This document shows, piece after piece, positions 9,301-15,300 of a stretch of DNA of 64,000 nucleotides. Source of the stretch: Macrostomum lignano (Eukaryota). The notes below the pieces were generated by a model. It had not been told where the DNA came from. It searched no databases and worked only from the letters and a program-made list of their open reading frames with translations. The DNA is taken from NCBI GenBank assembly GCA_002269645.1, contig NIVC01000993.1, positions 62,001 to 126,000 on the forward strand. Reading direction: 5' to 3'. Each line of letters begins with the position of its first letter. Within the stretch, counting starts at the first letter, position 1. The translations under genes were made by a program, and so were the position numbers.

Positions 9301-12300
9301 ATTAGAGAATCCCATTTATGACCTTTGGAAAATCCCTATATCGTTTTGATAGGGAATTCCAACCTCCATGAAGAACGACCCCTTTGATAGGGAATCCCAA
9401 ATGCCATTATTGAGAAATCTCTAGACTGCCTTGATGGGAAGCCCCATCAACCAGAATCCTATCCGCTATGAGAGGGGAATCCTATCCCGTCTATCCTCTA
9501 TGAGAGGGGAATCCTATCCCGTCTATCCTCTATGAGAGGGGAATCCTATCCCGTCTATCCTCTATGAGAGGGGAATCCTATCCCGTCTATCCTCTATGAG
9601 AGGGGAATCCTATCCGCTGTGAGAGGGAAATCCTATCCGCCATGAGGGGGGAATCCTATCCGCCATGAGGGGGGAATCCTATCCGCCATAAGAGGGGAAT
9701 TCTATCCGCCATAAGAGGGGAATCCTATCCGCCATAAGAGGGGAATTCTATCCGCCATGAGACGGGAATCCTATCCGCCATAAGAGGGGAATTCTATCCG
9801 CCATAAGAGGGGAATCCTATCCGCCATGAGAGGGGAATCCTATCCGCCATAAGAGAGGAATCCTATCCGCCATGAGAGGGGAATCCTATCCGCCATGAGA
9901 GAGGAATCCTATCCGCCATGAGAGGGGAATCCTATCCGCCATGAGGGGGAATCCTATACGTCATTAGGGGGAATCCTATCCGCCATAAAAGAGGAAACCC
10001 CTCTGTTGTGAAAGAAAAACCCCATAAGTACGAGCGTACGAATAGACGTTAAGAAATATTCGCATTCTCACCCAACAGAAGTCGCACGTGTACAAGAAAA
10101 CTCTGCAGGCAGTCTGCTACCCAATCAGCTGTACAGTGCCGCACAGCTTTCAAGTTTGGTCGGCCACCAGTCCCACCTACTGTCACGAGTGCGAAGGCCT
10201 GCTGTGGGGCATCGCCCGTCAAGGCGTCCGCTGCAGCCAGTGCGGGGTTAAGACGCACGAGAAATGTAAAGACCTGCTGAATGCCGACTGTCTGCAACAG
10301 GCGGCTGAGAAATCCTCCAGACACGGAGCCGAAGACAAGTCGGCCGCGATTCGGCAAGCGATGCAGGTGAGATGGTCATTCGTAATTTGATAATATTGGA
10401 GGAATGCAGGCTTGAGGGCCTAATGGGGCGGAAGTAATGAAGCAGGACTGACTAAGAGTGGAATCTATCTGGTTCCTTTCTGATATCCGATATTGGGAAG
10501 CTAATAAACAACTCTTTTTCTGCAGTGGGTACTGCCACTATCCACTGTCTTTAAGTAAATCTGGTCACTACCCACTGTCCTTCAGTAGGTCTGGTCACTA
10601 CCCACTGTCCTTCAGTAGGTCTGGTCACTACCCACTGTCCTTCAGTAGGTCTGGTCACTACCCACTGTCCTTCAGTAGGTCTGGTCACTACCCACTGTCC
10701 TTCAGTAGGTCTGGTCACTACCCACTGTCCTTCAGTAGGTCTGGTCACTACCCACTGTCCTTCAGTAGGTCTGGTCACTACCCACTGTCCTTCAGTAGGT
10801 CTGGTCACTACCCACTGTCCTTCAGTAGGTCTGGTCACTACCCACTGTCCTTCAGTAGGTCTGGTCACTACCCACTGTCCTTCAGTAGGTCTGGTCACTA
10901 CCCACTGTCCTTCAGTAGGTCTGGTCACTACCCACTGTCCTTCAGTAGGTCTGGTCACTACCCACTGTCCTTCAGTATACACTAATAACCCTAGAATTTC
11001 ATCTTAGAATCCTAAAAATTATCTGAAAAATGCGAAAAAAACTAACATATTTTGCATCTTGCAGGAGAGAATGCAATCTAGAGAGCAAGCTCGACCAGAA
11101 GTATTCGAGCTCGTCCGTCGAGTATTCGGTGTCGACGAAGCGAGCCATCGGGAGCAGCTGCGCGCGGTACAACTCTCCATTCTAGAGGGCAGCAGCAACT
11201 GGAGCGCCAAGATTGCCATCACTGTGATTTGCGCGCAGGGTTTGATAGGCAAAGATAAAACTGGCACCTCCGACCCCTACGTCACTGTGCAGGTGGGCAG
11301 GCTGAAGCGTCGAACAAAGACTGTGCCGCAAGAATTGAACCCAACCTGGAATGAGAAATTCTACTTGTGAGTGAAAAGTACTTTTCGACTATATAGAATA
11401 GAAGAACGTACTAAATTAAGCTACTTTTTTCATCACTTGATTACAGTGAGTGTCACAACTTTTCCGACCGAATCAAAGTTCGAGTTTGGTAAGTCGATTC
11501 CATTTTATTAAATGTACGAGCTGACTAAATGTTGATTATCAGGAGCTTGGAGCAGAAAGCAGTGTGTTACAAGCTGAGATTTGTGTCTTTAACTAAGATT
11601 GGTGTGTCTGTAGCTGAGATTGGTGTGTCTGCAGGTGATATTGGTGTCTTTAGTTGAGATTGGTGTGTCTGCAGCTGATATTGGTGTGTCTGTAGCTGAT
11701 ATTGGTGTGTCTGCAGCTGAGATTGGTGTGTCTGTAGCTGATATTGGTGTGTCTGTAGCCGCAGAGATTAGTGTGTCTATAGCTGTGATAGGTGTGTCTG
11801 TAGCTGAGATTGATGTGTCTGTAGCTGAGATTGGCATGTCTGTAGCTGAAATTTGTGTCTGTAGCTGAGTGTGTCTGTAAGATATTTGGTATTAAAAGTT
11901 GATGATGGATACTTTTTGTAGACTAATTTTTGTCTGCGCCTAATATTTTCCAGGAAGTTCAATTTTGATTTCATTAAATTTAAAGACACGCTTTGTTTGC
12001 TTAAAAGGAAATTACAAGTAGTAATTCATTTTTGGCTTTCATTAATTCGTATTCGCAATTGCGTACGATTACTATTTGAAAGACAAGTTACTGAGGTCTG
12101 TCAGATTAGCTCCTAAAAAGAAAAGTGCCCAATAACACCCAAAAAATTGCTATGATAAAAAAGGGACGAAGACAACGATCTGAAGTCAAGAATTCGTCAA
12201 CGACTCACCAGAGAGTCCGATGATTTTCTCGGTCAGACTCTGATCGAAGTTCGCACTCTATCGGGCGAGATGGACGTCTGGTACAACCTGGGTAGGTTGG

Positions 12301-15300
12301 CCACTCCCCTAACCCGATTGTCTCTCCACTAACTCACCCGGTTGCTAATAACTGTGTTAACTAACTCTACACGTGAGTTAAAACCCAGTTCTCGAAATCT
12401 CTTCTCGCTACTGCTAGTCTACCTGCCAAGTCAAACCGAAAAATGTCTGTCTTTATGTGTACACTGTAGTTACGTCTTTGCACTTCTCTAGTATCGTGTG
12501 TCTAATAAGACGGGCAACTTTGACACAGTGCTCGAGTGTTAATTGTCTGACGCAAGATATTACGTGTGGCCGAAGTGAAGTTCAATGATTTGGGGTTAAT
12601 GGGGTGGAGGCTAACGGGCCGACCAGAAAATCGATAACGGTACACCATCAAGTTTACAATTCGGGGGTTGGCCCAGTCAAAAGCTACGCTGGTATAAAGT
12701 GGATTGGAAAGATCGGGGCTAAGTGGGGTGGGGGGTCAACGCGCCGACCAGAAAATCGATAAGTTAACACGCCCAGGCTAAATGAACAGCGGCAAAAACT
12801 ATTGTAGCAAAGCGCGCCTGCCCATCGTGGATAAAAGGTTTGGGGTAAGGGGGTTTAACGGGACCGACAAAAAATCGATATGACATCCACCCAACTCACA
12901 CGCCCAGGCTAAAGAATGCAAGTCAACTTGAGAAGACAGTGTCTAGTGTGTGACAACAGTGTGTGCCAAATAGGAACTAATCTCCTTACGCATCATTCAT
13001 ACCTTTTGAAAAATTGATCAGTTTAAATGCAATTTAAATTCGATGGTAAGAAAACCTTATTTACGGCTATTCTGGCTTATTCTCAGGACACACGGTACTC
13101 CTATGTTGTTTTAGATTTTTGAGGTTGCACCTTGCTTTTCGGGTTTTGCGTCTGTAGCTGAAAAAACCGAATCCCGAAAGGCAAAGGAAATTGAAATGAT
13201 AAACATATCGAATGATAGACTGCTGTAACCATTTTATTTTTCTAGCAATTTCAGTAGCCAATTTCAGAAGCTAATTTGTATTCAGTACGTTTTAGAAGAG
13301 TTTTTTATCGTGTTTCATACTTCCTGTGATACTCGTACCTATAGCGATAGCGTGGACTTAAAAACAACAATGAAAAATATTTCTTTTTGATTCCAAATTA
13401 GGCTAGAAAGACTGACAGGCCTTTAAAAAGGTAGCTACTCGTAGTCAAATACGCACTCTGTCGCCTATTCAATAATCAGGGATGAGGACAACGACCTGAG
13501 GGCTCGAATCCGTTCAAAGTTAACGTCCGAGTCGGACGACTTTCTCGGTCAGACAATGATCGATGTGAGCAAATTGTCCGGCGAAATGGACGTCTGGTAC
13601 ACTCTCGGTAGGTTGCAAGTGGGCCCAGCTTGAATCGGCTGTGTTGCTAAGAACCAACTATCGAAGTTTAGGCATTATGGTTTGGCAGAAGTTTTAGTTA
13701 ACAATACAAACTATTAAACACTTTGGTGCTTCCTTAAAGCCTATTTACTATATTTGTTCTGTCATTTAATGTTGTAAATATTTCTTACATTTTTATACAT
13801 TGTCAAATATGCATGTAGCTACGCTAGGCAGTTGTTATGCAACAAGACGACTGGTAAGGATATGAATGACACCTTTTTATGGAAATTTGTGTCAGGCTAG
13901 TATTTTATCTCGAAAAGCCTGAGAAATACATGTACTACATTGGAGACTAATTAGCAAGCGTCATTTTATAAAAACTCACTTATAACTTTCTACACATCCT
14001 GTTACATTATAAATGTTATAAAATATTTTATTGCTTGATACAAAACTTCGGAACTTGCTTAGAATCAGTGCAATATTATTTCGTTTTCTACCGGTTTTTT
14101 TTGTGCAGCAGGATCACGCCAGATTCCAGCAGACCAGGGCGCTTCTTTCGTATTGCTGGGCGCAGCTTCTCCTGCAGAATCCACTTGTAGTAGTCCCCAT
14201 TGACGGTGGTTCCTTGTGGGACTGCCCAGTTCAGCAGGATTCCTTGGGAATCAAAAAACATGACGTGCATGATCTTTATCGCGCCCTGCTTCCTGATGGC
14301 CTTCTGAGGTCTTGGAGAATGTGCTGGAAGCCATTCGGCAGACTGGGCCTTTGTCTCAGGATCCCAGCTGTAAACCCACGTCTCGTCTCCAGCAACAATT
14401 CTTGATAGAAAATCCTCCCCTTCTCGATGGAACCGACGCAGGTGGCTGCTTGAAGCCAGAGTTCGCTGCATCTTTTGCTCACCTGTCAGCAGGTGTGGCA
14501 CCCACTTGCAGAACTTTTTCTGCAGGAGAAGACGCTCAGTCAGAATAGTGTGGACGCTTCCTACTGACACACCAACGTCTTCTGCCAACTCTTCGCAAGT
14601 CCGTCGCCGATCATCATCCAAGAGCTCTTGCACTTTCTTCACAACAGTCTCTTTAGTTGCAGTCATTGGCCTTCCAGAGCGGCCATTGTCCTCAACGCTC
14701 TCTCTTCCCTCAGCGAACAGCCGGTACCATTTTCGAACTGTCTGCTCAGTTGGTGCACAGTTGCCAAGCACTTGCTGAAGCTCCCTAAACATATCCGGTG
14801 GCTTTTTTCCTTGCAGAAACTGAAACTTCATCAAGCTTCGAACGTCTTGCTTTGAAAATGATTCAGCCATGGCCAAGAAATTGAGTGGCAGCTGATAGAA
14901 ATGTTCGCTGCTCTAACATAGTTGCAAACTGAGACTTAAAACCCTAGGAACGTTTAGGCCATAGACATAACTTGGTAAAATCGCTAAAATTCTGTTTACA
15001 ACGCTTTCTAAAAATAAATGCCAAAGGACCGAAAATAACTTTTTGAATAAACCTCGTAGTATTTTTCCCAATTGTAAAGTTGCTAAACTTGGGAATCAAA
15101 CTCCGATCAAACGCATTACAACTGATGTTCGGACATGCCCCGTATTACCTGTGCATTTTGAAACGTAATTAAGCCTCTAGAAAATCTGAAAAACTTCTCT
15201 TTGCTCCCAATGGTCCATACCTGTACAGAAAACAGTTGCGTTTTATTTTTTGCAATACGCTCGTAACTATTCACTTCAGAGAAGCGAACGGACAAGTCGC

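Follow-up and report, generated by a model that had tools for sequence, protein, structure and literature searches.

Mutually exclusive exons that arise by tandem duplication are a well-known class, with examples in SNAP-25 (5a/5b), CaV1.2 (8/8a), C. elegans unc-32 and let-2, and Drosophila Mhc and Dscam1. Isoforms are also familiar in the Unc13 family, among them Drosophila Unc13A/B, C. elegans UNC-13L/S, and mammalian Munc13-1, bMunc13-2, ubMunc13-2, and Munc13-3. These Unc13 isoforms differ N-terminally, through alternative promoters or gene duplication. Here, we analyzed a stretch of 64,000 nucleotides (nt) of Macrostomum lignano, a flatworm of the Macrostomorpha within Rhabditophora and Platyhelminthes (GenBank assembly GCA_002269645.1, contig NIVC01000993.1, positions 62,001 to 126,000 of the forward strand; hereafter the window) that carries part of an unc-13 gene. 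Two neighboring 128-nt exons of this gene, A and B, encode two versions of the same Ca2+-binding loop in C2B. Of the M. lignano unc-13 paralogs, which number at least three, this one very probably holds A and B as a tandemly duplicated pair of mutually exclusive exons.

Like the exon pairs known from other genes, A and B are adjacent, homologous, and equal in length and phase. They differ from them in gene and in domain, and in that no selector or docking RNA structure was found at A/B; their exclusivity is explained by the reading frame alone, with a loophole at a second donor 4 nt further on. The nearest parallel in biology is SNAP-25 5a/5b, where the swap changes few residues of a presynaptic fusion protein. 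As with the known Unc13 isoforms, the outcome would be one priming machine in several flavors with different release properties, but the swap in the window falls inside the C2B core. Vertebrate Unc13 paralogs vary in the same helix (RFKRE, RLKRE, HFKKE/HFKRE), in their case by means of separate genes.

The placement of such a pair in the C2B loop seems to be undescribed. We found no account of an Unc13/Munc13 C2B exon swap in the full-text literature, although most subscription journals lie outside its coverage and absence there is not proof; the two articles found to name unc-13 together with mutually exclusive exons deal with other matters. RefSeq isoforms from bivalves and from the brachiopod Lingula nevertheless already imply the swap. 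C2B is the switch by which Ca2+ and phosphatidylinositol 4,5-bisphosphate (PIP2) raise Munc13 activity during repetitive firing, and its loop 3 holds the membrane helix and R769. What makes the pair interesting is its age and its location: among the loops of a core synaptic protein, this one is the most constrained and the most decisive for function.

Anatomy of the exon pair and its conservation in flatworms

The exons that concern us, all on the forward strand (+), are listed below; a slash marks a splice junction.

9096..27331, +, the part of unc-13 inside the window (C1, C2B, MUN, C2C), located by tblastn with a Munc13 probe and M. lignano model P0121
11065..11366, +, C1-C2B linker and first half of C2B, including Ca2+-binding loop 1 (D705/D711 equivalents); acceptor tgcag/GAGAGA, donor TACTT/gtgagt
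11447..11488, +, constitutive 42-nt exon that joins A or B; its last codon is split TG/G and its end reads ..GTTTG/gtaagt
12164-12291, +, exon A, 128 nt, the canonical version across bilaterians; AG acceptor, G/GTAGGTTG donor
12292..12301, +, tandem donor GTAG/GTTGGC after exon A, with the second GT at 12296-12297
13480-13607, +, exon B, 128 nt, the flatworm-type variant; AG acceptor, G/GTAGGTTG donor
15280..15395, +, constitutive downstream exon encoding the end of C2B

The N-terminal exons lie upstream of the mapped part. Within it, the exons encode C1 (~10.08-10.37 kb), C2B (11.07-15.40 kb), MUN (15.8-25.2 kb), and C2C (to 27.33 kb), in the same order as in Unc13/Munc13, and the nearest proteins carry the Pfam domains C1_1, C2, and MUN. 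With either exon, the C2B domain aligns end to end and without gaps to rat Munc13-1 C2B (PDB 5UE8, 7T7C, 6NYC) at E ~1e-78. The top database match of the stitched protein is the M. lignano UniRef model P0248 (96% identity), which contains four long exon peptides exactly. One of its exact stretches is the peptide of exon 11065..11366, which also aligns to rat Munc13-1 C2B. Together, the rat alignment and the C1/C2B/MUN/C2C exons bear out the original prediction, made from the letters of the window, that the gene is unc-13 and the domain C2B.

Exons A and B lie 1188 nt apart between one shared pair of constitutive exons, and an equivalent of the 42-nt exon stands directly upstream of the pair at every locus examined. 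Their phase is identical: the first base of each is the third of a Trp codon, and the last base is the first of a Glu codon. We translated the four possible combinations. Inclusion of A alone or of B alone leaves the frame open. Joining A to B through the first GT of the donor gives ..WYNLGMRTTT followed by a stop, seven codons into B, and leaving out both gives ..VRV and a stop at once. The equal lengths, matching phases and donors, and stops that had been predicted for these exons were thus confirmed by reading, alignment, and translation of the sequence. The accompanying claim that exactly one exon must be used holds for the first GT and fails for the second (+4 nt), from which A and B are joined in frame.

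The exons are identical at 92 of 128 nt (72%) and at 33 of 43 amino acids, and of their 36 nucleotide differences 21 fall at third codon positions. In a tblastn search of the 64-kb window, the A and B peptides matched each other at E = 1e-19. As the next match reached only E ~1, there are exactly two copies, with a similarity far beyond chance; a third exon copy in the window was considered and rejected on the same ground. Criteria for predicting mutually exclusive exons are given in an earlier study (PMC3228551). As in clusters of exons born by tandem duplication, the copies here are adjacent, homologous, and equal in length and phase, and both are under selection.

By the mechanism we propose, the spliceosome would join position 11488 to 12164 or 13480, and then 12291 or 13607 to 15280. 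Because 128 is not a multiple of 3, mRNAs with both exons or with neither would be cleared by nonsense-mediated decay. The choice would probably be set by cell-type-specific splicing factors. Two UNC-13 priming factors would result, alike except in how C2B engages Ca2+/PIP2 membranes, and they could diverge in how efficiently they prime, in release probability, or in short-term plasticity.

The A+B pair is present in all three M. lignano unc-13 paralogs. At the locus of the second paralog (L006), A occupies 48830-48957 and B 49852-49979, between equivalent flanking exons. Window B is 83% identical in DNA to B of that locus and 77% to its A, while window A is 79% identical to A and 76% to B. 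This closeness of like with like indicates that the duplication is older than the paralogs and that the copies have not been homogenized. The protein encoded by exon A is 98% identical between the two loci. Proportions of synonymous and nonsynonymous differences (pS and pN, Nei-Gojobori method) are 0.93 and 0.03 for A against A and 0.54 and 0.08 for B against B, with a ratio of nonsynonymous to synonymous change (dN/dS) of ~0.085 for B. Judged by these codon comparisons, both exons are shown to be under strong purifying selection.

The pair extends to parasitic flatworms. Two 128-nt AG..GT exons, again ordered A then B, are found in the trematode Echinostoma caproni (L002 7849-7976 and 9547-9674); at the level of the genomic sequences, this shows that the A/B pair arose before Macrostomorpha and trematodes parted. 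In Paragonimus, a model uses the B type. In the tapeworms Echinococcus, Mesocestoides, and Dibothriocephalus, protein models (and for Echinococcus also the locus) hold a B-like exon only, and a sensitive search of the Echinococcus locus found no decayed copy of A. Schistosoma mattheei has A only, and an equally targeted, sensitive search of its intron (2973 nt, N-free) found no decayed copy of B. The combination of R763, S768, and a residue other than Arg at 772 (rat numbering) occurs in 7/7 flatworm type-2 exons and in 0/17 type-1 sequences; none of the latter (0/17) lacks R772, and R763 and S768 occur each alone in one. This shared signature supports a single origin of the flatworm type-2 exon before the Macrostomorpha/Neodermata split.

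These data bear on three rival explanations. The first is that exon B is a dead copy, never spliced or spliced only as noise, so that the gene makes only the A isoform. It has in its favor that the National Center for Biotechnology Information (NCBI) model of an M. lignano paralog uses A, as do all proteins found outside flatworms, bivalves, Lingula, and the annelid Owenia. The frame, the length of 128 nt, and the AG/GT sites are nevertheless kept in three paralogs old enough for their synonymous sites to be saturated, as well as in the trematode; the dN/dS of B is ~0.085; and B, or a B-like exon, is what the Paragonimus model and the tapeworms use. We considered and rejected pseudo-exon status for B, and a dead copy is extremely unlikely. 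The original prediction had named, as possible outcomes that would speak against B, a lack of conservation and a dN/dS near 1. What we found instead is an exon with intact splice sites in the M. lignano paralog and in the trematode, a similar second copy in an annelid, and the low ratio given above.

According to the second explanation, the extra exon serves mainly as a "poison" partner, and splicing of both exons or of neither would set UNC-13 dosage through nonsense-mediated decay. The premature stops, within seven codons or at once, are what such a device would require. It would have no need of protein conservation, yet B keeps 33/43 residues and all the acidic ones under a dN/dS of ~0.085, and the B type is the sole exon in tapeworms. 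We give this explanation scarcely any credence.

The third explanation is an assembly artifact, in which haplotypes or paralogs were collapsed into one scaffold. M. lignano does have several unc-13 paralogs and a duplicated genome, but the order of A then B, ~1 kb apart, also occurs on the other M. lignano scaffold and in Echinostoma and Owenia, and A and B are only 72% identical, with synonymous sites saturated. Recurrence of the pair in independent assemblies agrees with the earlier judgment that haplotype collapse was improbable, and we discount it almost completely.

C2B loop 3 residues encoded by A and B

Each exon spans the equivalents of D757 to L798 of rat Munc13-1; numbering follows an alignment to 5UE8, with the construct starting at 529, and loop 1 D705/D711 are as in PMC8691950. 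This segment is Ca2+-binding loop 3 of C2B and comprises D757 and D759, an inserted helix, D775/D776, and then two beta strands and a turn. An AlphaFold model of Owenia C2B (mean pLDDT, the predicted local distance difference test score, 82.6) places a strand up to W756/D757, a helix at 762-770 (local pLDDT ~52), a strand at 776-784, a turn at 785-789, and a strand at 790-797. The modeled helix matches the amphipathic alpha-helix, termed unique, that has been described for a Ca2+-binding loop of Munc13. In simulations, its hydrophobic side chains enter the membrane while basic residues bind lipid head groups (PMC8648301). R769 in this loop is essential, since the R769E mutation severely impairs liposome bridging and vesicle priming (PMC8648301). 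The D705N/D711N mutations abolish Ca2+ binding (PMC8691950).

Residues 757, 759, and 775/776 are Asp in both A and B, and the D705/D711 equivalents lie in the upstream exon; the choice between D775 and D776 as the ligand would follow from the C2 consensus. Both exons also keep the hydrophobic L762/I766/L770 and a basic residue at 763, 765, 767, and 769. In comparison with rat Munc13-1 C2B and its mutants (D705N/D711N, K706E, R769E), the acidic residues and a basic residue at 769 are kept in both versions, and the residue comparison upholds the prediction that the acidic ligands are retained while the basic loop and the stretch after it differ.

The differences fall into two clusters. In the helix, K763R and R769K keep basic the residues that flank the hydrophobic face, and S764A, Q768S, and R772S lie on the polar face, spaced i, i+4, i+8 and 131 to 171 degrees from the hydrophobic direction on a helical wheel. 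From A to B, the net charge of the segment falls from +3 to +2 and the hydrophobic moment from 1.12 to 0.55. The second cluster (L782M, E784D, R786S, T787K) covers the end of the following strand together with the turn, and N797T lies where the last strand ends. Relative to the sequence that is invariant in bilaterians, B is changed at 764, 768, 772, 782, 784, 786, 787, and 797; in the Munc13-1 C2B papers that we consulted, PMC8648301 included, we found no mutation of the rat protein at these variant positions between 764 and 797. We infer that membrane binding governed by Ca2+/PIP2 differs between the A and B isoforms, and with it priming or plasticity.

In the canonical exon, the 24 residues 775-798 do not vary between flatworm and rat; in type-2 exons, variation occurs at 781-787, 789-793, and 796-797. 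The alternative exon therefore samples sequences that are barred to the canonical one, and, given the invariance of the 24 residues after the helix, alternative exons are natural experiments that break an otherwise absolute constraint. Selection has maintained them for hundreds of millions of years. They single out the polar helix face (positions 764, 768, and 772) and the turn that follows (784-787) as candidate sites for the tuning of priming and short-term plasticity, and they provide a handle on whether neuron or secretory cell types of simple animals use different priming factors.

Equivalent exons beyond flatworms

At the genomic level, the annelid Owenia fusiformis has two tandem 128-nt AG..GT exons (L005 18250-18377 and 19215-19342), the second of which reads ..KAKLRSKLTRE... 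Lottia and Priapulus each have one exon, the canonical A. In bivalves and Lingula, the evidence is at the protein level and comes from automatic annotation. Pairs of RefSeq isoforms of equal length that differ only in these 42 residues were found in bivalves and Lingula (Crassostrea angulata X1/X2; Dreissena X1/X2; Mytilus trossulus X1-2/X3 and X5/X6; Ruditapes X4/X5; Mizuhopecten X13/X14; Lingula anatina X1/X3), and Mya arenaria isoforms, which bring the bivalves to six, show the same 42-residue swap. The RefSeq isoforms listed for seven spiralian species carry one version or the other, never both. At the level of transcript models, then, the swap is real in these relatives. The gastropod and cephalopod isoforms listed have a single, canonical version, and arthropod and vertebrate sequences, considered as protein models, are all canonical.

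The exon of bivalves, Mercenaria/Ruditapes included, and of Lingula has the same boundaries as in the window, and its variable positions overlap those seen there (768-774 and 784-787). Each bivalve lineage has its own variant: oysters, mussels, and scallops read ..IDVTTLS.., venerids, Dreissena, and Mactra read ..RKAFTPEPD..AQLCGEMT.., and Mya reads ..RKTFTREGD..AQLCGETT.., which is related to the latter. Because of these lineage differences, a common origin with flatworm B is unproven, and an exon of 42 residues is too short for a tree.

Exon choice in C2B loop 3 could tentatively be viewed as an ancestral spiralian, possibly older, device that goes back to one ancient duplication into a canonical and a "tunable" exon, although we think this less likely than not. 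The pair would then have been kept in flatworms, annelids, bivalves, and brachiopods and repeatedly lost, with only the canonical exon left in Schistosoma, Lottia, and the non-spiralian Priapulus and only the variant in tapeworms. Vertebrates would reach the same end through differences in this helix among the Unc13A/B/C paralogs. Several features hint at such an ancestry: the second copy is always downstream, A764 and S768 are common to the Owenia second exon and flatworm B, R786 is lost and E784D present in both the bivalve and the Macrostomum variants, and two versions of the helix occur across Branchiostoma species.

In Branchiostoma, B. floridae isoforms read ..KSRLKQKLSRE.. in this helix and B. 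lanceolatum ..KSRVKHKFNRE.. (RefSeq, cluster P0311), with five differences in an exon that is otherwise invariant. On the basis of these protein sequences, the difference could reflect a chordate exon pair or plain divergence between species. A separate observation concerns Lingula anatina, whose RefSeq isoforms X1/X2 (P0365, P0373) are equal in length and differ only at 1367-1389, a stretch of 23 residues between MUN and C2C. This pattern suggests a second mutually exclusive unc-13 exon pair in that species; the exon that matches the stretch is present in a single copy in the window (25448-25591).

Splice sites, fused gene models, and other elements of the window

Paired exons have donors that deviate from the consensus (gtaggt, gtgcga, gtcagt, gtgggt), whereas those of the single-copy exons of Schistosoma and Lottia are gtaagt and gtaaga. 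Although the sample is small, non-consensus donors at paired exons fit regulated splicing. In the window, a tandem donor GTAG/GT follows both A (12292-12301) and B (13608-13615). When A is extended by 4 nt to the second GT of G/GTAG/GT and joined to B, the product is in frame and reproduces the junction in P0248 exactly.

This junction raises a further alternative, in which A and B are included together through the second GT and give an in-frame insertion of 44 residues that duplicates loop 3 and two strands. In addition to P0248, model P0122 carries the same "GR" junction, and the GTAGGT donor after exon A is kept in two paralogs. These models were, however, generated automatically, and P0123 fuses A and B through other linkers of its own invention, a common mark of predictors that force a frame. 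The A donor of Echinostoma (gtgcgaat) has no second GT, none of the listed bivalve and Lingula RefSeq isoforms holds both versions, and two extra strands and a second Ca2+ loop would be expected to fit poorly into the eight-stranded C2 sandwich. Double inclusion is therefore very unlikely. The fusions look like the work of such a predictor, and by joining A to B several public M. lignano unc-13 models are in error; the public models with a duplicated C2B segment are A0A1I8HVR6 (P0122), A0A1I8HM34 (P0123), A0A1I8IN99 (P0247), and P0248. A Mytilus coruscus model (P0259) likewise fuses both versions.

Several observations count against mutually exclusive use of the two exons, or against a difference in function between them. 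The models of three M. lignano paralogs (P0248, P0123, P0122) join A to B in frame, so that double inclusion is not formally barred by the frame. The sole NCBI model that we inspected, PAA82660.1 of the second paralog, uses A only. Splicing of B into M. lignano mRNA is predicted from the genomic comparisons, and a short-query protein search for spliced B-type fragments returned none from Macrostomum for either exon type. Between the window and the paralog, we found no conserved intronic element that could enforce exclusivity beyond the 10-nt A donor. Finally, at the residues of greatest known importance, A and B differ only conservatively (R769K, with the acidic residues kept), and confidence in the modeled Owenia helix is low.

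In the comparison of the window with the paralogous locus, intron identity is confined to the 10 nt that directly follow exon A (GTAGGTTGGC), and the remaining intron of these two sequences cannot be aligned. Our search for docking/selector pairing turned up, as the sole notable inverted repeat, a minisatellite and a site in a transposon, and no Rfam match was found across 9-28 kb. The minisatellite has a 21-nt unit in ~14 copies at 11572-11869, in the intron upstream of A, with a stray unit at 13145-13161 in the A-B intron. Its counterpart is a 25-nt arm, 80% complementary, at 14561-14585, downstream of B and within the open reading frame (ORF) of the transposon. Pairing of the two would loop out both exons; the complementarity is probably fortuitous. 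The A-B intron also contains, at 12601-12913, three copies of a repeat of ~120-125 nt (..GGGCCGACCAGAAAATCGATAA.. and ACACGCCCAGGCTAAA) with no Rfam match.

Further repeats and mobile elements occupy other introns of the gene. In the intron that separates the C1 exon from the first exon of C2B, a 30-nt tandem repeat that is almost perfect (14.7 copies, 98% matches) takes up 10536-10977. The transposon between B and the downstream exon is represented by a mariner/Mos1-like transposase ORF of 262 aa on the reverse strand (14091-14876; Pfam HTH_48 and Transposase_1). The 6-kb unc-13 intron at 15983-21980 holds an element of the long interspersed nuclear element type, also on the reverse strand (18043-20814), with reverse transcriptase and endonuclease ORFs and a GC content of ~66%, compared with ~42% around it.

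Outside the mapped part of unc-13, three large tandem-repeat arrays (1411-3466, 6111-7164, and 56285-57460) are open in several frames, and we saw no sign of coding in them. A Ty3/gypsy-type retrotransposon spans 37200-45960 and has a pol ORF of 1016 aa on the reverse strand (39464-42511) with reverse transcriptase, RNase H, and integrase; similar sequence at 37.2-37.6 kb and 45.5-45.9 kb, at the ends of the element, could represent its long terminal repeats. On the forward strand, the window also contains an exon of a STEEP1 homolog at 52811-53110 and two exons of a homolog of the nuclear import carrier Hikeshi at 60785-61168 and 62646-62933.

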